Shown: positions 6,407-50,890 of the stretch, piece after piece
Position numbering within the stretch: the stretch's first letter is position 1
Layout: every line of letters starts with the position of its first letter
Origin: Rhodosorus marinus CCMP1338
Taxonomy: Eukaryota > Plantae > Rhodophyta
Direction of reading: 5' to 3'
DNA length: 64,000 bases
Assembly (NCBI GenBank): GCA_029953675.1
Contig: JAMWBK010000009.1
Span: forward strand, 310,001-374,000
Made by a program: the position numbers and the translations under genes
Notes under the pieces: model-generated
Database searches by the model: none
The model's input: the letters and a program-made list of their open reading frames with translations, nothing else
Told to the model about the DNA's origin: nothing

Positions 6407-6757
6407 CAGACCCGCTGATTCTTAGCAGCAGCAAGCGAGCAAACAGAGATTTTCACTTTTAATCGTGTGGCACAGAGGATCAGCGATTGTGATTTGCAGC
6501 GGATGGATGCTTAGTCGTCAACCAACCAAAGCAAATGAAAGATTCATCCACAACTCGTCACGTGGGGATCCGACCCCAACCAGACCCGCTGATTCTTAGC
6601 AGCAGCAAGCGAGCAAACAGAGATTTTCACTTTTCATCGTGTGGCACATAGGATCAGCGATTGTGATTTAGCAGCGGATGGATGCTTAGTCGTCAACCAA
6701 CCAAAGCAAATGAAACAGCCATCCACAGCTCTTCACGTGGGGATCCGACCCCAACCA
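6407..6757. repeat. Tandem dimer of a ~174-175 bp intergenic unit
   Basis: cagacccgctgattcttagcagcagc...ggggatccgaccccaacca occurs at 6407-6582 and 6581-6757 with a few substitutions and indels. Confidence 0.95.
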
Positions 6758-20931: not shown

Positions 20932-21185
20932 CCTACGAACGGGGTCCGTCAAAGCGCGGGAAAACGGATATCCAAAAATACCTTGGCTAAATAATAGCCT
21001 ATTACATATCCATATATTCAATAGTAATCACCAAAAACAGCTCATGTACCCTCTTCAGGACACAGCAGCTACTACCCAGACTCCTCACCATCGCCCAATA
21101 GCACTGACACGATCCCCATCCGCAACGAAACCTTAAAACCAAACAATTTCCACAGAAAAACTCACACGGCATGAATAAATCCATT

Positions 21186-21533
21186 TTCAATATTTACTTC
21201 AAAAACACTTTAGAATGGATCGGAATCGGCGAAAAGATAATACCTGTTATTATTTTATATATTCTATATAAACTGTAAGCTGCGGTCAACACCGCATTAG
21301 ATATTCACAAATAACTACTGGTTATAGTGTTTTATTGTATTTATTACCGTTTGTCTTCGATCTTCAATATTTACTTCCAGAAAACTTTAGAACGGATCAG
21401 AATCGTGGAAAAGACAATACGAACTATTATTATTTAATTTATATAAATTGAGAGCTGTAGACAATACGGCATAATATATTTAAAATAAACATGAATTATA
21501 GTGTTTTAATTTATTTTTGCGGTTTGTCTTCGA
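21186..21533. repeat. Diverged tandem dimer of an AT-rich ~173-177 bp unit
   Basis: ttcaatatttacttc...tttgtcttcga at 21186-21360 and again at 21363-21533, with collinear blocks (ctttagaa.ggatc.gaatcg, ttattatttt, ttatagtgtttta). Confidence 0.85.
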
Positions 21534-38336: not shown

Positions 38337-40222
38337 ATGTCTGTTTGTTTTGTCGGAGGGTTTGGGTTGGGAAGCGCGCTAAGGGCGCCGAGGTTGTCCT
38401 CCCATCGGAGTAGAACGATGCTGACGCGAGCGAGTTTGTCTGTAGAGGTTGAAACGGCGACTGTTTTGCCGATTAAGAAGATTTCCGGCGAGGTAGACTG
38501 TGACTGAAGGATCAATTCTAGTGGTTCCTCCGGCGGCGGATGAGACCCAGCAGGGGGCGTGCCGGCTAGCCGTTCAGCGCAGTGTTAGCGTTGCTAACTA
38601 GAAACTTTCCTGATGCTATTGTTTGTGTGGTTTGCAGGTCACGCTGCCGGGATCTAAATCCTTGTCGAACCGAATGCTGCTGTTGTCGGCTCTGGCTGAA
38701 GGCAAAACGGATGTCCTCAACTTATTGCACTCAGATGATATCACGTACATGCTTGGTGCGCTTACTGCGCTTGGCATTCCGTACGAGTACAACCAGGACG
38801 ATAAGAAGGTTACAGTGGATGGGTGTGGGGGAAAAATCCCCAGCGAAGGAGCTGAGCTTTTCTTGGGAAACGCTGGCACGGCCATGCGCCCGTTGACCGC
38901 AGCTCTCTGTGTTGGAAACGGAAAGTACGTCAATACGAGCCTATGGATTTTTACAGTTTCATGCGAATGCCTGTTCCCTATCTTCCTGACCTGGCTTTTC
39001 CCGGCTCAGGTTCATCCTCGATGGCACCGCGAGAATGAGAGAAAGACCAATTATTGACCTCGTCGATGCTCTTCAACAGCTGAACGTTGATATTACTTGC
39101 AGCGACACCGGGTGTCCACCAGTCGTTATTAATGCGAGTGGCATCCCGGGAGGCAGGACCAAGGTATCGCTCCGTTCCTCTTCTCCTCACGCGCTGAGCC
39201 ATATGCGATTTCTCGCAGAGCCAGTTGTCTCAAGCGGCTTTTCTGCTTATCGCGCTCCAGGTCAGCGGCAAGATTTCGTCCCAGTATCTTTCCGCGCTCC
39301 TCATGGCGTCGCCTTATGCAAAGAGTGACGTTGAGATCGAGATAACTGACACACTTGTGTCTGTTCCTTACGTGCTGATGACGATCAAGCTCATGGAACG
39401 TTTTGGAGTGGTTGTGGAAAATCTTGATAACAAAGTGTTCAAGGTTGCTGGAAACCAAATGTACAAGGCACCAGGGAGAGCGTTTGTTGAAGGTGATGCT
39501 TCGTCAGCGTCCTACTTTCTCGGAGGTGGAGCAATTACTGGCGGTCCCGTGACGGTCGTTGGATGCGGTAAGACGTCTCTGCAGGGCGACGTTGAGTTTG
39601 CCAATGTTCTTGGATTGATGGGCGCCAAGGTGAGTTCTTGGAGAGCGCACTCCGCGAGCACCGCAGCTAGCTTATGGTGTAAGTGGTGGTACATTTACAG
39701 GTCGAATGGTTTGACGAGAAGATCACAGTTAGCCGCCCGGAAGGTACAACACTCAAGGGCATCGATGTCGATTGCGGGGACATCCCGGACGCGGCAATGA
39801 CACTTGCGGTAATCGCATTGTTTGCAGAAGGCAAGACGGCAATCAGAAACGTGTACAACTGGAGAGTGAAGGAAACCGAAAGGATGAAGGCGATCGTAAC
39901 CGAGCTGAGGAAACTTGGTGCTACAGTGGAAGAGGGCCACGACTATTGCGTGATTGAGCCTCCAGCGGTAAGCTGCTGCTTTGGTAGCGCCAAAGAAGCT
40001 GTCACTCTTTTTTCCGCACGCTGACCTGCTAGGTTGATTTCCTGTTTTACCTTCTAGAAACTCAACGAAGCGAGCATTGACACGTACGATGATCATCGCA
40101 TGGCCATGGCGTTCTCACTTGCAGCATGCGGTTCCGTACCCGTGGTGATCAACGACCCAAAATGTACTGCAAAAACTTTCCCAACTTACTTTGACGAGCT
40201 GCAAAAATTGATCCAGGAGTAA
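38337..40222 (+). CDS. aroA: 5-enolpyruvylshikimate-3-phosphate synthase, plastid-targeted, intact copy
   Basis: [86 protein letters not shown]. Confidence 0.97.
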
Positions 40223-42986
40223 AAACCCAGTTCACTTGTTCTTCCAGTCCGGCTTTTGCCCTGATCGCGTTGCCCTTCCTTTTTTTCCCTCGTTCGAGCA
40301 AACAAATCGGTGATGTGAGGCCTGCCCGTGCTTGCGAATGCCGTAACCGGGAGAGCTCGCGGGATAATGTGTCGGCATCCATTCGCGGTTGAACAGAGCC
40401 TGCCCTCGTCCACTACGAAAACAGTTCATCGACGCCCGCCGGGAGCTGAAAGTACGAGTCGATCTCTTCGACATCGCTGATAGACTTCAGACTCCACTTC
40501 GGATTTCTGTCCTTATCAATTAGAGCGGCCCGGATGCCCTCATAAAAATCTCCGCCTCCACTCTGCGTCACCAAGTTGGCTACTAGAGCAAACTCCATCT
40601 CAAAGCACTCTCTCAGGGTGCTCTGGGATCCTCTCTTCTGTGCTTCAAGGGCCAACTTGAGCGACACTGGGTTTGCTTTTGTCATCGAATCGATGGCTTC
40701 CTCTGCGAACTCCAAAGCCTCACCACCATTGGCCTTCAGTTTCTCAAGTTCTTCCAGAATCTCTTCCACTGTATCTTTTCCAAAGCAGCTTTCTATGTTC
40801 TCTATATTTGGGTAGTTTCCGATGGGGGCGACCGCCTCCGTACACTCTTCCAAAGCTAGAGTCACGGTTTTAGGCTCGAACTCCCTCGTGTTGATTACCT
40901 CGGACAGTCTTCTCTCCAAACCATCCAGGAGAGAAGTAGGCACGTAGTGCGTCGCAACGCCAGCAGCCACAGCTGCAGCTCCGTTGAGTCTAGCGCCTGT
41001 CAAAGCAAGGTATCTGTACAGGCCACAGTCGAGAAAAAGACAAATCTCAGTACTGGTGGTTGAGTCCATTCTAGCGGCTCCCTAGGTTTGGTTTTCGAAT
41101 GTACTAACCTTCCAATTTGTTTTGGCAGCCTTGGAAGGAAATACGAAGCTCCGATGTCCGGTATAAGTCCAATGTTGCACTCGGGCATGGCAAAAACAGT
41201 GGACTCTGACGCGACTCGATAGGATCCATGCACGCTTATGCCCGCTCCGCCGCCCATACAGATCCCTTCAATGAATGAAATCTGTTTCGTGGTCTTGAGA
41301 CTGCCTAGGAGGTAGTCCAAGTGGAATTCGTGCCTGAAAACGTCAAGAGCTTCTTCAAACAGGCCATCTTTACAAGCCAGCGCAACTTTCCGCGCGTCAC
41401 CGCCGGCGCAGAAAGCCTTTGGCGTTGTCGATCGCATAATAACTTTCGGAGAAGAAGAAGGATAAGACAACCTTCGGGTGTCGGTGCTCCTCGTGATCAA
41501 AGAACCGTCAGAGTTTCCTTACCCGCAGAGACCAAATCAGATTCATCGAAGCGGGAGACCCTTTCAAACACTCTCTTGCACATTGATGTGCTCAGAGCGT
41601 TAAGAGCTTTGGGCCTGTTCAAAAGAAGCGTCCTGGCATTGCTCCTGTTAGGCGTTGCCACCCGCTCAAGAACCTCGGCCGTCCCATCGACATCGAAAGC
41701 CGTTGACCCGTCCTCCAAAACCTCTTCAACCGGGAAAACCGTCGAACTCGACATCCAGCGCCTCGGTGAAAGCCTCCTCCTGCAGTGTCCAACAACGACA
41801 GGATGAATGCTCATCCCACAAGTATTAAATACAAAACCAAGCTCTCTCAATCTCGCCACAGCGCTTTTACTTGATCATAGGTCCTTCAAAAGCCATACAA
41901 AAAGAAGCCCTAACAAGTCAAAGTCGATCCAGTATTCAATCCCTTTGCTAGCATCCTCATCCGTTCATTGATCCTTCCATACATCCTCACTCTACATCAT
42001 ATCATCTTCTTCGTCAGCCTCCATATCGTCGGCAATGAGACACGAGGGTGTGGCCAAAAAAACCAGATCGGATCGATGCAAGAGAGATTATGATCAAGTA
42101 TCGGCTCAACGTATCCTCTCTAGAACATGATAGCATAGGTTAAACATACCGCCCTAGTTTGGAAGCAGGTGTGTTAAAGCCAGATCCGATCGATTCACTG
42201 GTTCGGATCTGGATGGACGAGTCAGATATGCTTCGCCGGGATCTGCTGAACAATCTTCTCTGATCGGCTGAGCGGATTGGATTGGGCTGGAAACAACCCT
42301 CTTGAGACCTTGGACGATCAGTGAACCTGAAGCGGTGTTCGTTTAGTCCAAGAAGCAATATGTTCACCACCGCGAATCTAAGAGAGAGATCCCGTCTTTT
42401 GGAATCAGCTCCAACGTATCCTCTCCTGTTCGATGAGTTTATTACCTGAGCAGATTGCGTTAGGCTGGAAAGCTTTACTAAGCGACCCGACTGCCAGAAC
42501 AGATCCAAGCTCCTGTTCAGGTTCTGAGGAATCAACTGAGCAAATCCTCTTGAAGTACCTGAACACAGGCGATGCTACACTCTACGCCTCGTGACCTGGC
42601 ATGGACCGTACCAGTTTGTTCCATTCATCATCGAGTGCTTTGGCTTAGTTGGTAACACAGCTCTCCTTGGCTTCGTGCTGTCTCTTTCGGGAGCGACCCA
42701 GGGAGTCTTGGTAGCCTCCCCACGGAGATGTCTTTGAGTCTCTGGAGTTCAAACGCGGCTTTATTGCTGGACGCGCGTCCTCAAGTGTCTTATTTCTAGC
42801 TTCTCGCGGTGGCTAGGCTATGGGATGCTGTTCGAGGCGAATGACTCGCTCAGTCACTGTGAGCGATGTGCTGAGCGACACTAATTCATCGGTCGCTGGT
42901 TCAATGCGACGACTAAAGGAGTCTCAGTACGTTATGGCGACGACTCCTCCAACCCTTACGGGACTCTGCGTCGTGTCTCTGGTTTG
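39500..42986. repeat. Segmental duplication copy 1 (EPSPS 3' half, HIBCH, orphan segment)
   Basis: Collinear and about 99% identical by eye to 44041-47529. Confidence 0.95.
40413..41814 (-). CDS. HIBCH: 3-hydroxyisobutyryl-CoA hydrolase, copy 1 (mitochondrial crotonase fold)
   Basis: LNRPKALNALS, KAFCAGGD, GICMGGGAGISVHG, FAMPECNIGLIPDIGASYFLPRL, YLALTGARL, DFYEGIRAALIDKDRNPKW. Confidence 0.93.
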
Positions 42987-44041
42987 GTACCAAGCGGAGG
43001 GAGGGGGGGAAAGAGAGCTACCCACCCACCTGGACTGATAAAAAAAACGTTGCAGATTGACCCAGTAGCCTGAGTCAACATCAATTCACACCTCTTCAAC
43101 CCAACAGCAGACACTAGTAGCGTTCAACAGAACGGTTGAGAAAGAAGGCGTTTCAGATACTGTACCGAGCGGAGGGAGGGGGGGAAAGAGAGCTACCCAT
43201 CCACCTGGACTGATAAAAAAAACGCGTTGCAGATTGACCCAGTAGCCTGAGTCAACATCAATTCATACCCTCTTCAACCCAACAGCAGACACTAGTAGCG
43301 CTCAACAGAACGGTTGAGAAAGAAGGCGTTTCAGATACTGTACCGAGCGGAGGGAGGGGGGGAAAGAGAGCTACCCACCCACCTGGACTGATAAAAAAAA
43401 GCGTTGCATATTGACCCAGTAGCCTGAGTCAACATCAATTCATACCCTCTTCAACCCAACAGCAGACACTAGTAGCGCTCAACAGAACGGTTGAGTAAGG
43501 CGTTTCAGATACTATACCGAGCGGAGGGAGGGGGGGGAAGAGAGCTACCCACCCACCTGGACTAATAAAAAAAGCGCTGCAGATTGACCCAGTAGCCTGA
43601 GTCAACATCAATTCACACCCTCTTCAACCCAACAGCAGACACTAGTAACGCTCAACAGAACGGTTGAGAAAGAAGGCGTTTCAGATACTGTACCGAGCGG
43701 AGGGAGGAGGGGAAAGAGAGCTACCCACCCAACTGGACTGATAAAAAAAGCGTTGCAGATTGACCCAGTAGCCTGAGTCAACATCGATTCACACCCTCTT
43801 CAACCCAACAGCAGACACTAGTAGCGTTCAACAGAACGGTTGAGAAAGAAGGCGTTTCAGATACTGTACCGAGCGGAGGGAGGGGGGGAAAGAGAGCCAC
43901 CCACCCACCTCGACTGATAAAAAAAGCGTTGCAGATTGACCCAGTAGCCTGAGTCAACATCCATTCACGCCCTCTTCAACCCAACAGCAGACACTAGTAC
44001 CGCTCAACAGAAAGGTTGAGGAAAAAGGCGTTTCAGATACT
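42987..44041. repeat. Tandem array 1: six units of a 174-178 bp repeat
   Basis: Units start at 42987, 43162, 43340, 43514, 43690, 43866 (gtaccgagcggagggaggggggg...ggcgtttcagatact); a few differences between units. Confidence 0.97.
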
Positions 44042-44765
44042 TCGTCAGCGTCCTACTTTCTCGGAGGTGGAGCAATTACTGGCGGTCCCGTGACGGTCGT
44101 TGGATGCGGTAAGACGTCTCTGCAGGGCGACGTTGAGTTTGCCAATGTTCTTGGATTGATGGGCGCCAAGGTGAGTTCTTGGAGAGCGCACTCCGCGAGC
44201 ACCGCAGCTAGCTTATGGTGTAAGCGGTGGTACATTTACAGGTCGAATGGTTTGACGAGAAGATCACTGTTAGCCGCCCGGAAGGTACAACACTCAAGGG
44301 CATCGATGTCGATTGCGGGGACATCCCGGACGCGGCAATGACACTTGCGGTAATCGCATTGTTGCAGAAGGCAAGACGGCAATCAGAAACGTGTACAACT
44401 GGAGAGTGAAGGAAACCGAAAGGATGAAGGCGATCGTAACCGAGCTGAGGAAACTTGGTGCTACAGTGGAAGAGGGCCACGACTATTGCGTGATTGAGCC
44501 TCCAGCGGTAAGCTGCTGCTTTGGTTGCGCCAAAGAAGCTGTCACTCTTTTTTCCGCACGCTGACCTGCTAGGTTGATTTCCTGTTTTACCTTCTAGAAA
44601 CTCAACGAAGCGAGCATTGACACGTACGATGATCATCGCATGGCCATGGCGTTCTCACTTGCAGCATGCGGTTCCGTACCCGTGGTGATCAACGACCCAA
44701 AATGTACTGCAAAAACTTTCCCAACTTACTTTGACGAGCTGCAAAAATTGATCCAGGGGAGTAAA
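44041..44765 (+). pseudogene. aroA: 5'-truncated EPSPS fragment
   Basis: Begins mid-exon at (D)ASSASYF with no start or transit peptide; 1-nt deletion near 44362 (ttgtttgc to ttgttgc) and +2 G near 44757 relative to copy 1. Confidence 0.85.
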
Positions 44766-44954
44766 AACCCAGTTCACTTGTTCTTCCAGTCCGGCTTTTG
44801 CCCTGATCGTGTTGCCCTTCCTTTTTTTCCCTCGTTCGAACAAACAAATCGGTGATGTGAGGCCTGCCCGTGCTTGCGAATGCCGTAACCGGGAGAGCTC
44901 GCGGGATAATGTGTTGGCATCCATTCGCGGTTGAACAGAGCCTGCCCTCGTCCA

Positions 44955-46356
44955 CTACGAAAACAGTTCATCGACGCCCGCCGGGAGCTGAAAGTACGAG
45001 TCGATCTCTTCGACATCGCTGATAGACTTCAGACTCCACTTCGGATTTCTGTCCTTATCAATTAGAGCGGCCCGGATGCCCTCATAAAAATCTCCGCCTC
45101 CACTCTGCGTCACCAAGTTGGCTACTAGAGCAAACTCCATCTCAAAGCACTCTCTCAGGGTGCTCTGGGATCCTCTCTTCTGTGCTTCAAGGGCCAACTT
45201 GAGCGACACTGGGTTTGCTTTTGTCATCGAATCGATGGCTTCCTCTGCGAACTCCAAAGCCTCACCACCATTGGCCTTCAGTTTCTCAAGTTCTTCCAGA
45301 ATCTCTTCCACTGTATCTTTTCCAAAGCAGCTTTCTATGTTCTCTATATTTGGGTAGTTTCCGATGGGGGCGACCGCCTCCGTACACTCTTCCAAAGCTA
45401 GAGTCACGGTTTTAGGCTCGAACTCCCTCGTGTTGATTACCTCGGACAGTCTTCTCTCCAAACCATCCAGGAGAGAAGTAGGCACGTAGTGCGTCGCAAC
45501 GCCAGCAGCCACAGCTGCAGCTCCGTTGAGTCTAGCGCCTGTCAAAGCAAGGTATCTGTACAGGCCACAGTCGAGAAAAAGACAAATCTCAGTACTGGTG
45601 GTTGAGTCCATTCTAGCGGCTCCCTAGGTTTGGTTTTCGAATGTGCTAACCTTCCAATTTGTTTTGGCAGCCTTGGAAGGAAATACGAAGCTCCGATGTC
45701 CGGTATAAGTCCAATGTTGCACTCGGGCATGGCAAAAACAGTGGACTCTGACGCGACTCGATAGGATCCATGCACGCTTATGCCCGCTCCGCCGCCCATA
45801 CAGATCCCTTCAATGAATGAAATCTGTTTCGTGGTCTTGAGACTGCCGAGGAGGTAGTCCATGTGGTATTCGTGCCTGAAAAAGTCAAGAGCTTCTTCAA
45901 ACAGGCCATTTCTACAAGCCAGCGCAACTTTCCGCACGTCACCGCCGGCGCAGAAAGCCTTTGGCGTTGTCGATCGCATAATAACTTTCGGAGAAGAAGA
46001 AGGATAAGACAACCTTCAGGTGTCGGTGCTCCTCGTGATCAAAGAACCGTCAGAGTTTCCTTACCCGCAGAGACCAAATCAGATTCATCGAAGCGGGAGA
46101 CCCTTTCAAACACTCTCTTGCACATTGATGTGCTCAGAGCGTTAAGAGCTTTGGGCCTGTTCAAAAGAAGCGTCCTGGCATTACTCCTGTTAGGCGTTGC
46201 CACCCGCTCAAGAACCTCGGCCGTCCCATCGACATCGAAAGCCGTTGACCCGTCCTCCAAAACCTCTTCAACCGGTAAAACCGTCGAACTCGACATCCAG
46301 CGCCTCGATGAAAGCCTCCTCCTGCAGTGTCCAACAACGACAGGATGAATGCTCAT
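44955..46356 (-). CDS. HIBCH: 3-hydroxyisobutyryl-CoA hydrolase, copy 2 (closer to family consensus)
   Basis: Same motifs and exon structure as copy 1; carries GGDVR and FFRHEYHM. Confidence 0.93.
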
Positions 46357-47813
46357 CCCACAAGTATTAAATACAAAACCAAGCTCTCTCAATCTCGCCA
46401 CAGCGCTTTTACTTGATCATAGGTCCTTCAAAAGCCATACAAAAAGAAGCCCTAACAAGTCAAAGTCGATCCAGTATTCAATCCCTTTGCTAGCATCCTC
46501 ATCCGTTCATTGATCCTTCCATACATCCTCACTCTACATCATATCATCTTCTTCGTCAGCCTCCATATCGTCGGCAATGAGACACGAGGGTGTGGCCAAA
46601 AAAAACCAGATCGGATCGATGCAAGAGAGATTATGATCAAGTATCGGCTCAACGTATCCTCTCTAGAACATGATAGCATAGGTTAAACATACCGCCCTAG
46701 TTTGGAAGCAGGTGTGTTAAAGCCAGATCCGATCGATTCACTGGTTCGGATCTGGATGGACGAGTCAGATATGCTTCGCCGGGATCTGCTGAACAAGCTT
46801 CTCTGATCGGCTGAGCGGATTGGATTGGGCTGGAAACAACCCTCTTGAGACCTTGGACGATCAGTGAACCTGAAGCGGTGTTCGTTTAGTCCAAGAAGCA
46901 ATATGTTCACCACCGCGAATCTAAGAGAGAGATCCCGTCTTTTGGAATCAGCTCCAACGTATCCTCTCCTGTTCGATGAGTTATTGCCTGAGCAGATTGC
47001 GTTAGGCCGGAAAGCTTTACTAAGCGACCCGACTGCCAGAACAGATCCAAGCTCCTGTTCAGGTTCTGAGGAATCAACTGAGCAAATCCTCTTGAAGTAC
47101 CTGAACACAGGCGATGCTACACTCTACGCCTCGTGACCTGGCATGGGGCGTACCAGTTTGTTCCATTCAGCATCGAGTGCTTTGGCTTAGTTGGTAACAC
47201 AGCTCTCTTTGGCTTCGTGCTGTCTCTTTTCGGGAGCGACCCAGGGAGTCTTGGTAGCCTCCCCACGGAGATGTCTTTGAGTCTCTGGAGTTCAAACGCG
47301 GCTTTATTGCTGGACGCGCGTCCTCAAGTGTCTTATTTCTAGCTTCTCGCGGTGGCTAGGCTATGGGATGCTGTTCGAGGCGAATGACTGGCTCAGTCAC
47401 TGTGAGCGATGTGCTGAGCGACACTAATTCATCGGTCGCTGGTTCAATGCGACGACTAAAGGAGTCTCAGTACGTTATGGCGACGACTCCTCCAACCCTT
47501 ACGGGACTCTGCGTCGTGTCTCTGGTTTGTGCCGCTGATCATAAAGTGCCTTTGGGTTGTTAGACAGTGTTGCTTCTCGCTGGCTTCATCGCGTTTTTCA
47601 CGATGCCCCCTAGCCGTCTTGACAGCCTCCTCACGGAGCTGTCTCTGACTCCCTGGTGTTCGAATCGAAATGTTGCTTTGTTGCTGGACACGCGTCATCA
47701 GTGTCTCCCTTTCCTCTCGTCAGAGTGGACGGGTTCTGATGCTGTTAATAGGAGTTTGGTCCTTGAGGATGATGAGGAGGAAGAGAATCGGAGAGGAGGA
47801 CTGAGGAGTGTGG

Positions 47814-47920: not shown

Positions 47921-47993
47921 AGGAGTACTTTGGGTTTTGAGAGGGTTGGTATTGTTGGATGAAGGTATTTGTTGTGAATTGGTAGTTGATAAG

Positions 47994-49715
47994 ATGGGGG
48001 TTGATGATGGTGAAGAGGAGGTGAAGGAGAGGGTAGGTGAAGGGAGTGGTGGGGAGGAGAGTGGTGGTGAGTCTGGTAGTGGAGAGGAGAAGGGGAAGGA
48101 AGAGGATGAGGAGGAGGAGGGGGAAGAGGAAGAAGAAGAAGACGAGGAAGAAGAGGATGACAACAAGGATGAGGAAGATGAGGATGATGGTGAAGAACAA
48201 GAAGAGGATGAAGAGGAGGATGACGAGGAGGAGGACGACGATGACGACGAAGGTGATGATGATGATAAGGAGGGAGACCAGGGTGGTGATGATGATGATA
48301 AGGAGGGAGACCAGGGTGGTGGTGATGATGATGATAAGGAGGGAGAGCAAGAGGGGGATGAGGAAGATGAAGGGGATGAGGAGGATGAGGAGGACGTGGA
48401 GGATGAGGAGGATGAGGAGGATGAGGAGGGTGAGGAGGATGAGGAGGGTGAGGAGGATGAGGAGGGTGAGGAGGATGAGGAGGATGAGGAAGAGGAGGAG
48501 GACGACGACGCGGACGAAGAGGATGATGATGAGGATGAGGAATCTAGGAAAGAGTCTGGAGCGGATGGGGAGGATGAGGGAGAAAACGATGAGGATGGGG
48601 AAGAGGAGGATGCCGAGGGAGAAGAAGGTGAGGAAGATGACGACAAGGACGAGGACCAAGGGGACAAGGATGATGACGAAGAAGATCAGGAGGAGAGGGA
48701 TGATGATGATGAGGAGCAGGGGGATAATGACGACGAGGAGGAGCAGGATAAGGACGCTGAAGATGAGGAGGCAGGGGACAAAGACGACGAGGATGAAGAG
48801 GATGAGCAGGTCGAGGATAGGGACGACGAGGAAGAGGAGCGAGAGATTAAGGACGACGAGGATGAAGGCGAGGAGGGGGAAGAAGTGGAGGATGATGATA
48901 TGGAGAAGCGACAGAGCGAAGTCGAGGACGGTGAGAACGAACAGGATGATGAACGGGATGACGATGAGATGCAAGAGGACAGTGAGCTCGATGCGTCACC
49001 TAAGAGGGGGGATGAGGTGGGAAAGAGCGCTGAGGATCGAACCGGAAAAGGGAAGAATAGGAATACTGGTGGAAATGGAGGGACGAAGCGAAAACTTGAA
49101 AGAGAAATCTCTCCTGAACACGGTCGAAAGTCCAAGAAGGTTGACAAGAAAATAGACGAGGATGCTAAAGCACAAGATGAAGATATAGACGAAGGGGATA
49201 CCGAGGAGCTCGCTGAGCTCGCTGAGAACGATGCGCAAGCGGAACTGGAACGGCACCGAACTTCAGAAGATAGGATGGACGCAGATGCAATAGCAGAAAA
49301 GCCATCTCAAGGGGACGACCCCTCAATGCTAGAAAGTCAAGCAAGCACGGAATCTATGCCTCCGTCCCCGCCACCTTCGCCACCACCTTCCCCGCTGAAA
49401 ATGAAACGGTTCGAATTCGATGGAAGCGACAACCTCACTGCGGAGGAACGGATTGAGGCGGTAACAAGTTGGCAAAGACAGCACGTATCGTCCTACTGTG
49501 CAACTTTGAAAGGTCACCATCTGCACCTGAAGAAACTCATGCGAAAGAAGACTCAACGCCTAAGAGAGAGAGATCGACTGGAAACCGAAGCCGTTCGAGT
49601 AGCTCGCGGCCAAGTCGACGGACGATGTAGCAAATACCGAATGCCACTGGCAGCTTTCATGCCTTCTCGCCCACCGAAAAGTCAAACACCAGCTAAATTA
49701 CCAAAAGTAGACTGA
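47994..49715 (+). CDS. Orphan, intronless, extremely Asp/Glu-rich protein (~573 aa) with basic NLS-like patches and a short non-repetitive C-terminal region
   Basis: Uninterrupted ORF from ATG 47994; about 320 aa D/E tract with internal EEDEEG and DDDDKEGDQGG repeats; GTKRKLERE..RKSKKVDKK; PPSPPPSPPPSP; C-terminal FEFDGSDNLTAEERIEAVTSWQRQH... Confidence 0.6.
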   Translation: MGVDDGEEEVKERVGEGSGGEESGGESGSGEEKGKEEDEEEEGEEEEEEDEEEEDDNKDEEDEDDGEEQEEDEEEDDEEEDDDDDEGDDDDKEGDQGGDDDDKEGDQGGGDDDDKEGEQEGDEEDEGDEEDEEDVEDEEDEEDEEGEEDEEGEEDEEGEEDEEDEEEEEDDDADEEDDDEDEESRKESGADGEDEGENDEDGEEEDAEGEEGEEDDDKDEDQGDKDDDEEDQEERDDDDEEQGDNDDEEEQDKDAEDEEAGDKDDEDEEDEQVEDRDDEEEEREIKDDEDEGEEGEEVEDDDMEKRQSEVEDGENEQDDERDDDEMQEDSELDASPKRGDEVGKSAEDRTGKGKNRNTGGNGGTKRKLEREISPEHGRKSKKVDKKIDEDAKAQDEDIDEGDTEELAELAENDAQAELERHRTSEDRMDADAIAEKPSQGDDPSMLESQASTESMPPSPPPSPPPSPLKMKRFEFDGSDNLTAEERIEAVTSWQRQHVSSYCATLKGHHLHLKKLMRKKTQRLRERDRLETEAVRVARGQVDGRCSKYRMPLAAFMPSRPPKSQTPAKLPKVD

Positions 49716-49879: not shown

Positions 49880-50659
49880 ACACCAGTAGCCTGAGTCAGC
49901 ATCAATTCACATGACCCCAACCCAACAGCAGACGCTATTTGCATTCAGGAGAACGGTGGAGGGAGAAGGCGATTCAGATAATGTACGGAGCGGAGGGAGG
50001 GGGGGAAAGAGAGCTACCCATCCACCTGGACTGATAAAAAAAGCGTTACAGACCGAACCATTTAATCTGAGTCAACATCAATTCACACCCTCTTCAACCC
50101 AACAGCAGACGCTACTAGCGCTCAACGGTTGAGGAAGAAAGCGCTTCAGATACTGTACGGAGCGGAGGCAGGGGGGGGAAAGAGAGCTACCCATCCACCT
50201 GGACTGATAAAAAAAAGCGTCGCAGATTGACCCAGTAGCCTGAGTCAACATCAATTCATACCTTCTTCAACCCAACAGCAGACACAAGTAGCGCTCAACA
50301 GAACGGTTGAGAAAGACGGCGTTTCAGATACTGTACGAGCCATCCACCTGGACTGATAAAAAAAACGTTGCAGATTGACCCAGTAGCCTGAGTCAACATC
50401 AATTCATACCCTCTTCAACCCAACAGCATCACTAGTAGCGCTCAACAGAACGGTTGAGAAAGAAGGCGTTTCAGATACTGTACCGAGCGGAGGGAGGGGG
50501 GGAAAGAGAGCTACCCACCCACCTGGACTGATAAAAAAAACGTTGCAGATTGACCCAGTAGCCTGAGTCAACATCAATTCACACCCTCTTCAACCCAACA
50601 GCAGACACTAGTAGCGCTCAACAGAACGGTTGAGGAAGAAGGCGTTTCAGATACTGTAC
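49880..50659. repeat. Tandem array 2 of the same ~176 bp repeat (one partial plus four units)
   Basis: Partial unit from about 49880; units start near 49982, 50154, 50333 (internal ~30 bp deletion) and 50480; ends cagatactgtac at 50659. Confidence 0.95.
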
Positions 50660-50890
50660 GGATGGAGATGGGCTTAATGTGGAAATTGAACTGAATCGAA
50701 AATCGGTTGAACATGTTTTAGAAATATTTTATCTGAGTTTTGGGCGGAGGTAGTCTTCTGAGAGGAGTTTTCGATAAGAGGAATGGGGATGTGGGCTGAG
50801 GGGGGAGGGGGGAGGGAGGGGGAAGGAGGTTTTGTTGTAGAAGATGCTTGGAGCAGTCTGTGAAATTGTAAGATTGAAGAGCTTGAGAAG

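Follow-up and report, generated by a model that had tools for sequence, protein, structure and literature searches.

A stretch of 64,000 nucleotides from Rhodosorus marinus CCMP1338, a unicellular red alga (assembly GCA_029953675.1, contig JAMWBK010000009.1, positions 310,001 to 374,000 of the forward strand; hereafter the window, in whose own numbering all positions are given), carries a tandem duplication of gene-bearing DNA, and the two copies of the duplicated segment are separated by a block of satellite DNA with a repeat unit of 176 bp. From left to right the locus consists of upstream DNA, duplicate copy A, the satellite block (insert S), duplicate copy A', 2.35 kb of unique DNA and a second array of the same satellite family (Array 2). 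The duplication touches an EPSPS gene and an ECH_2/3-hydroxyisobutyryl-CoA hydrolase (HIBCH)-like gene. The features on which the analysis rests are given below, with the open reading frames (ORFs), self-BLAST alignments, Tandem Repeats Finder (TRF) results or nhmmer hits that define them.

38623..40219, plus strand: EPSPS, an intact, stand-alone, intron-containing gene, with its start upstream of 38623; it straddles the left edge of copy A
39495..39500, plus strand: GATGCT in the EPSPS exon, directly 5' of the duplicated segment; the microhomology partner, through whose 6 nt the BLAST alignment extends
39501..42986, no strand: duplicate copy A, 3,486 bp (self-BLAST)
40413..41859, minus strand: ECH_2/HIBCH-like gene, copy 1 (three exon ORFs)
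42986..42987, no strand: left junction, from the end of copy A to the first satellite base; blunt, with neither microhomology nor extra bases
42987..44041, plus strand: insert S, six monomers S1 to S6 (TRF, unit alignment, six full-length nhmmer hits)
44036..44041, plus strand: terminal GATACT of the satellite, a 5/6 match to GATGCT
44042..44857, plus strand: EPSPS 3' fragment, promoter-less (Pfam positions 237-417)
44042..47529, no strand: duplicate copy A' (self-BLAST)
44955..46401, minus strand: ECH_2/HIBCH-like gene, copy 2 (ORFs, codon comparison)
47529..47530: right edge of the duplicated segment, undisturbed, showing the pre-event sequence 3' of copy A
49883..50672, plus strand: Array 2, same satellite family; a partial unit that begins at phase 76, followed by four units (172, 178, 147 and 176 bp) and 7-17 nt of a further one

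The duplication can be read base by base. In a self-BLAST, positions 39495-42986 align with 44036-47529; the alignment is 99.06% identical and contains 27 mismatches and 5 gap openings, and the divergence between A and A' is 0.77% (27 substitutions in 3,486 bp). The duplicated segment begins midway through an EPSPS exon and ends between genes, and the spacer of 1,055 bp between its two copies is made up of 176-bp satellite monomers only.

The exon ORFs of EPSPS match successive parts of the Pfam family PF00275 (EPSP_synthase), namely profile positions 10-109, 157-284 and 280-368, and the duplication starts inside an EPSPS exon at the point corresponding to Pfam position 237/417. Copy A completes the intact gene, whose product ends in ...LQKLIQE before the stop codon. 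The second copy comprises the 3' 43% only, without the start codon or the 5' exons, as indicated by Pfam, the ORFs and a comparison of the translations. EPSPS gene amplification was considered as a reading of the locus and is ruled out, because only a 3' fragment was duplicated and the repeats do not each hold a complete coding unit. Relative to A, the fragment in A' also carries a GG insertion at 44756-44757, which shifts the frame of its tail (the last few codons) and reflects either the decay of a dead EPSPS fragment or a homopolymer polishing error.

The whole gene within the duplicated segment is the ECH_2/HIBCH-like one. Its first copy matches PF16113 at profile positions 2-37, 39-148 and 148-328, and the exon frames are open in both copies, with the sole new stop of copy 2 lying in an inferred intron. 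The duplication had been called gene-containing in a preliminary description of the window, made from its letters alone; this holds for the ECH_2/HIBCH-like gene but not for EPSPS, which is represented in the second copy by a promoter-less 3' fragment. The substitutions between A and A' are unevenly spread over the segment, with none in one stretch of 657 bp and 8 within another of about 89 bp, and this pattern suggests patchy gene conversion or the rapid divergence of one copy. The dense cluster, 8 of the 27 substitutions, lies in exon 2 of the HIBCH-like gene (41306-41395 versus 45848-45937), where it causes six amino-acid changes and one synonymous change, while the last exon of the gene is the 657-bp stretch with zero differences.

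The satellite block between the copies is regular. TRF assigned insert S a period of 176, 6.0 copies, 94% matches and a score of 1880, which, together with the copies aligned by self-BLAST on either side of it, bears out the original observation that six repeat units fill the junction of a tandem duplication. Splitting the block at each CAGATACT yields units of 175, 178, 174, 176, 176 and 176 bp, 1055 bp in total. The satellite share of the insert is 1053-1055 bp, or six units minus 0-2 ambiguous nt, and both ends are in register within 0-2 nt. Every unit of the insert carries the sequence ACTAGT, a SpeI site. The CpG observed/expected ratio is 0.57 in 42987-44041, against 0.91 for the whole window.

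The integer number of units needs to be stated with care. Both TRF and the preliminary description set the phase of the unit from the first base of insert S itself, and to say that the insert begins with the unit's first base is therefore circular. The non-circular content of "exactly six" is the mutual register of the two ends only, which does hold with a tolerance of 0-2 nt. If the ends were independent, they would lie this close in register with a probability of 1/176 to 3/176 (0.6-1.7%).

The two junctions of the insert differ in kind. On the left, the sequence reads ...gtctctggtttg/gtaccaagcgg (the slash marks the joint), while the counterpart in A' continues ...ggtttg/tgccgctg at 47529/47530; within the arrays, the satellite bases that precede gtacc are ...atact. 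Since no base is ambiguous between ggtttg/gtacc and ggtttg/tgccg, the left join is blunt and without filler bases. On the right, the junction ...gcgtttcagatact/tcgtcagcg is to be compared with the original ...gaaggtgatgct/tcgtcagcg. Direct reading confirms the microhomology GATACT/GATGCT noticed earlier at this joint: 2 nt are exact (ct, which either partner could have contributed) and 5/6 positions agree overall, with P(>=5/6) = 0.0046. The mismatched base is that of the satellite, as expected if the 3' end of the satellite annealed to the EPSPS exon and was then extended or ligated. Neither a target-site duplication nor terminal repeats flanking insert S were found when the junctions were read directly.

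Array 2, the only other occurrence of the family in the window, starts 2.35 kb downstream of the right duplication boundary in the same orientation as insert S. TRF gives its span as 49883-50660 and it is more degenerate than the insert; beyond these two arrays, an nhmmer profile search found no other copies or solo units of the satellite in the 64-kb window. The preliminary description placed its end at the same unit boundary as that of insert S, which a closer reading contradicts. Past the last CAGATACT, Array 2 runs on with GTACGGA, a 7/7 match to the first bases of units B2 and B3 in the array itself (GTACGGAGCGG), and so overshoots the boundary by at least 7 nt; with a 5-nt gap, the match possibly reaches about 17 nt. 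On the left, the array begins at unit phase 76. One end of Array 2 is thus near but not at the boundary used by insert S, and the other is far from it. The two arrays are not a single array split by an insertion, an arrangement which was considered and is ruled out, as the phases do not fit, S stopping at 176 and Array 2 picking up at 76, and a copy of unique genes lies in the DNA between them.

Unit B4 of Array 2 (50333-50479) has lost about 29 bp, which correspond to the entire G-rich polypurine tract of the unit (GGAGGGAGGGGGGGAAAGAGAG), and this hints that the tract is unstable. At the 5' edge of the tract GCGGAGGGAGGGGGGGAAAGAGAG, three discontinuities come together: insert S has its ends there (phase 0), Array 2 its right end (phase 7-17) and the B4 deletion its beginning (near phase 8). 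The 5' edge of the polypurine tract could accordingly be a fragile, breakage-prone spot.

The six units of the insert are far from uniform. They are 92.7-96.6% identical among themselves, and the unit nearest to each of them is B5 (50480-50655), the last full unit of Array 2, at 95.5-97.7%, above the identity of S units to one another. As B5 is nearer to every S unit than the S units are to each other, it approximates the consensus of the family. The six units differ from B5 by 3, 3, 3, 7, 6 and 8 substitutions, whereas 1.36 per unit would be expected at the divergence of A from A'. Furthermore, five variable columns have a minor allele common to some S units and some Array 2 units, and identity among the six S units follows no periodic pattern by lag. 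Because the S units vary far more than A and A' do and share variants with Array 2, these comparisons support the view that insert S was copied as one block of several units from an array that was heterogeneous beforehand, rather than grown from one monomer, as had been suggested at the outset.

The same comparisons rule out a rolling-circle concatemer of a small circle, which had been put forward as a possible source of the unit boundary: there is no lag periodicity, the units are heterogeneous, and 30 substitutions separate them from the consensus-like unit where about 4-8 would be expected. An apparent mirror-image order of variant types (S1..S4 versus B5..B2) involves too few characters, with 2/4 in conflict at column 40, and is taken as chance.

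From this arrangement it is probable that insert S consists of pre-existing satellite DNA used as filler in a repair or replication accident, with no need for a dedicated boundary machinery. As to the route, the reading favoured here, if tentatively, is that a six-monomer satellite block was captured as junction filler by way of a circle that had arisen by recombination between monomers and was opened once. One rearrangement, between sister chromatids or during replication, would have made the 3.49-kb tandem duplication by joining the end at 42986 to the start at 39501, and a ready-made block of six contiguous monomers would have been placed between them as filler. The donor block would most likely have come from an array of the same family, which lies only 2.35 kb from the right breakpoint. 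Homologous recombination between monomers would have cut out a circle of six of them; a single break would have made it linear, and its ends would have been ligated, bluntly on the left and, on the right, through the GATACT/GATGCT microhomology. That the break fell at ACT/GTAC, some 8 nt upstream of the G-rich polypurine tract, would be accidental or reflect no more than a fragile spot. The single event, the local donor and the circular intermediate are what we infer; the attraction of the circle is that recombination between monomers gives a whole number of units and that a single break, at any phase, leaves the two ends in register.

Each of these steps has precedents. It has been shown experimentally that satellite extrachromosomal circular DNA (eccDNA) of plants consists of integer multiples of the monomer and arises through homologous recombination (PMC2543021). 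In Drosophila, the rule that the first and last truncated repeats add up to a complete monomer was proposed for eccDNA reintegration and observed in six new Rsp-like arrays (PMC7403614), and in Tribolium satellite eccDNA has been reported and its role in the spread of satellites into gene-rich DNA proposed (PMC11610590). The capture of linear fragments at double-strand breaks is the subject of a study in yeast (PMC1976456), and that of proximal chromosomal DNA of one in vertebrates (PMC2671141). The following sequence features by which eccDNA reintegration is recognized are present here: an insert of monomers only, an integer length, end-joining junctions without target-site duplication or terminal repeats, and the heterogeneity of a source array. 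On all the criteria that can be assessed in the DNA sequence, the locus appears to work like eccDNA reintegration or filler capture. The expectation in the preliminary description that ordinary filler DNA would not respect unit boundaries is therefore not borne out, since satellite eccDNA comes in integer multiples of the monomer and its reintegration signature has been published.

Several points weigh against the capture of a reopened circle. The event is single and was picked out post hoc, so that a coincidence of the order of 1-2% could account for the register. The circular donor is deduced from its presumed product, no circle having been observed. If the right end was chosen by microhomology after trimming, its exact register would be partly luck. 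The co-orientation of S and Array 2 is predicted by local template switching, while the capture of a free fragment gives it half the time. No extant unit of Array 2 is nearly identical to an S unit (the best pair, S1/B5, reaches 97.7%), and the donor units must then have disappeared, be located in another part of the genome or have changed since. Finally, the satellite core and a 21-mer spanning the boundary had 0 matches in metagenome, prokaryotic-genome and viral collections, which do not include the R. marinus genome.

The alternative that survives best is replicative template switching of the fork stalling and template switching (FoSTeS) or microhomology-mediated break-induced replication (MMBIR) type, which is possible but unlikely. 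The nascent strand would leave its template at 42986, copy about six units from an array close by, either on the sister chromatid or on the same molecule, and re-anneal at 39501 through the GATACT/GATGCT microhomology; the register would be a coincidence or the result of repeated stalling at the G-rich tract. A co-oriented array of the family does lie 2.35 kb from the breakpoint, and the right junction shows a 5/6 microhomology whose mismatch carries the satellite base, as for an extended primer end. Templated insertions at tandem-duplication junctions are, moreover, well documented (e.g. PMC8654963 and PMC5120786). However, microhomology would be expected at every switch and the left junction has none; a register within 0-2 nt would arise with a likelihood of only 0.6-1.7%; and no present unit of Array 2 is near enough to have served as the template, with 3-8 substitutions per unit against the 1.36 expected. 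A circle is favoured over template switching because it accounts for the register automatically rather than by such a coincidence, even though the prior somewhat favours template switching.

The explanation offered in the preliminary description was that the boundary itself is mechanistically defined: units cleaved, nicked or recombined at ACT/GTAC, or ending there as processed RNA, would be released and would patch breaks. A chromatin-based variant of this model places the linker of phased nucleosomes at the same position. In the most developed form of the idea, the 5' polypurine edge at ACT/GTAC would be a preferred cleavage point, set by the sequence or by chromatin (e.g. the linker of nucleosomes phased at 176 bp), from which blocks of whole units are released that patch breaks and seed gene duplications. 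The exact register of insert S is in keeping with this, as are the palindromic nature of GTAC and the clustering of three discontinuities in the first 17 nt or so of the unit, next to the polypurine tract. Likewise, two unrelated tandem duplications elsewhere in the window show periods of 174-177 bp, and the same quantum of about 176 bp may underlie them.

Those two duplications are located at 6409-6757 (about 2.0 copies, period 174-175 bp, 95% identity) and at 21180-21533 (about 2.0 copies, period 177 bp, 78% identity, AT-rich). Apart from the satellite and the repeats of an acidic-protein gene, they are the only tandem duplications of 60-1200 bp found in the window. Together with the satellite, all three mid-size tandem repeats of the window share a quantum of about 176 bp, which may reflect nucleosome-length duplication.

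A defined site is improbable, however. Array 2 starts at phase 76 and runs at least 7 nt past the boundary at its other end, and the register of the insert is automatic for any circle opened once. No ribozyme or RNA family was detected in 42800-44200, where Rfam at E<=10 returned only chance-level matches to long non-coding RNAs and microRNAs far below the gathering score; the whole window yielded no Rfam match at gathering thresholds. A hairpin or cruciform at the boundary was likewise not found: folds of single-stranded DNA across and within the unit, computed with DNA parameters, gave z values of -0.96 to +0.86 against shuffled sequences.

Nor do the ends of the unit resemble those of a rolling-circle transposon. 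Helitrons begin with 5'-TC, end with 3'-CTRR preceded by a subterminal hairpin, and insert between a host A and T, and the units of their concatemers are identical when made. Here the unit reads GTACC...GATACT (its termini being judged by eye), the left host base is G, there is no target-site duplication, and the heterogeneity of the units excludes a concatemer from a single template. The RepeatMasker results for the published R. marinus assembly list neither rolling-circle elements nor annotated satellites.

It is quite improbable that the tandem layout or the insert is an artefact of mis-assembled long reads, for example alleles or paralogues placed in tandem. The nuclear assembly of CCMP1338, of 31.2 Mb, is a NextDenovo assembly of Nanopore reads with Pilon polishing (PMC10250338), and the 5 indels between A and A' could be polishing noise. 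Against this, the 27 unevenly spread substitutions indicate that A and A' are distinct sequences and not one read twice, and a repeat period of 4.5 kb is readily spanned by long reads. Mis-joined alleles would, moreover, explain neither a clean block of six satellite units nor a junction in the middle of an exon with microhomology.

A mitochondrial origin is very improbable. The 176-bp repeat would stem from the tandem-repeat part of the constant region of a mitochondrial minicircle and would have been captured by end joining as a nuclear mitochondrial DNA segment (NUMT). The authors of PMC10250338 describe the mitochondrial DNA of R. marinus as minicircles of 2-6 kb with tandem repeats in their constant regions, and NUMTs as unusually abundant in this alga. 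R. marinus nad4, the one mitochondrial gene of this alga that was considered, has a GC content of about 47%; the base composition is therefore compatible with a mitochondrial origin, and GC content was dropped as an argument against it. However, a SpeI site is present in each unit of the insert, yet SpeI yields a single full-length band for the minicircles probed in that study. Furthermore, both arrays are pure satellite without other constant-region or coding sequence, and two independent insertions of one repeat within 6 kb are unlikely and point to a local origin.

Most improbable of all is a sequence of two events, in which a plain tandem duplication came first and its junction was later hit, exactly, by the insertion of a satellite block: the sequence is compatible with this and junctions can be fragile, but it needs a hit on one phosphodiester bond with flanking bases neither lost nor gained, and the right microhomology is between the satellite and the EPSPS exon, as would be natural if those two had been joined directly.

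Some further observations concern the genes at and around the locus. The best match of the HIBCH-like protein in a collection of 5.8 billion proteins has 50% identity. Transcriptome proteins of R. marinus do sit in that collection, as shown by an ORF of the window that encodes a Miro GTPase of 460 aa, matching an MMETSP0315 protein at 98%; the next-best named matches of this ORF are in other red algae. Because no close match was found although such proteins are present, the HIBCH-like gene may have a low expression or be restricted to its lineage. A long ORF (47937-49715), located between copy A' and Array 2, encodes an extremely acidic protein rich in Glu and Asp; it is built from GAG/GAT-type repeats and is the source of many of the TRF rows of the window.

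If the structure is real, the locus offers a clean natural example, at base resolution, of a whole-number satellite block serving as filler at the junction of a gene-containing duplication, and it does so in unicellular red algae, for which the dynamics of satellites and the outcomes of repair have hardly been studied. The locus would link the dispersal of satellites into gene-rich DNA through circles with the birth of tandem gene duplicates. The duplication produced a second, already diverging HIBCH-like gene together with a dead EPSPS fragment. Taken alone, the locus reveals no new mechanism and says nothing on EPSPS dosage.

Among known systems, repeats bearing ribozymes, of the retrozyme or satellite-transcript type, can be set aside, as neither a ribozyme nor a structured RNA defines the ends of the unit. 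EPSPS amplification in glyphosate-resistant weeds such as Kochia (Bassia scoparia, PMC6808082) and Amaranthus palmeri resembles the locus in having a tandem duplication at EPSPS with repetitive DNA at its junction. The amplification in Kochia, which is associated with a mobile element, involves entire copies of EPSPS (PMC6808082). In contrast, the duplication described here includes only the 3' 43% of the gene and brings no gain in EPSPS dosage, has two copies rather than 3-8 or more, and has a satellite block rather than a transposon at its junction; nothing suggests selection by a herbicide.

The templated insertions attributed to FoSTeS/MMBIR or to polymerase theta (e.g. PMC8654963, PMC5120786) likewise combine a duplication with an insertion, with one microhomology junction containing one mismatch and a candidate template that is nearby and co-oriented. 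Unlike what these models predict, the other junction is blunt and the 1-kb insertion is exactly integral in units. The repair of breaks with filler or captured fragments (PMC1976456 and PMC2671141; for NUMT-mediated repair, PMC2567098) resembles the locus in that DNA is ligated between ends with little homology and that the probable donor lies within a few kb. It differs in that the filler is here a tandem repeat with ends in register, and in that it joins the ends of a duplication and not those of one break.

The closest likeness is to the reintegration of Rsp-like eccDNA in D. simulans and D. mauritiana (Sproul et al. 2020, PMC7403614) and to the satellite eccDNA of plants (Navratilova et al. 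2008, PMC2543021). As in those systems, the insert consists of monomers only and its ends sum to whole monomers, the junctions are of the end-joining or microhomology kind, and a short array stands in gene-rich DNA. Unlike in those systems, the block lies at the junction of a 3.5-kb duplication of unique DNA and not inside another satellite cluster, and the host is a unicellular red alga with one event, known here from sequence alone. The locus is a further instance of the signature described for them, in a new lineage and at an unusual site, the junction of a unique, gene-bearing tandem duplication.

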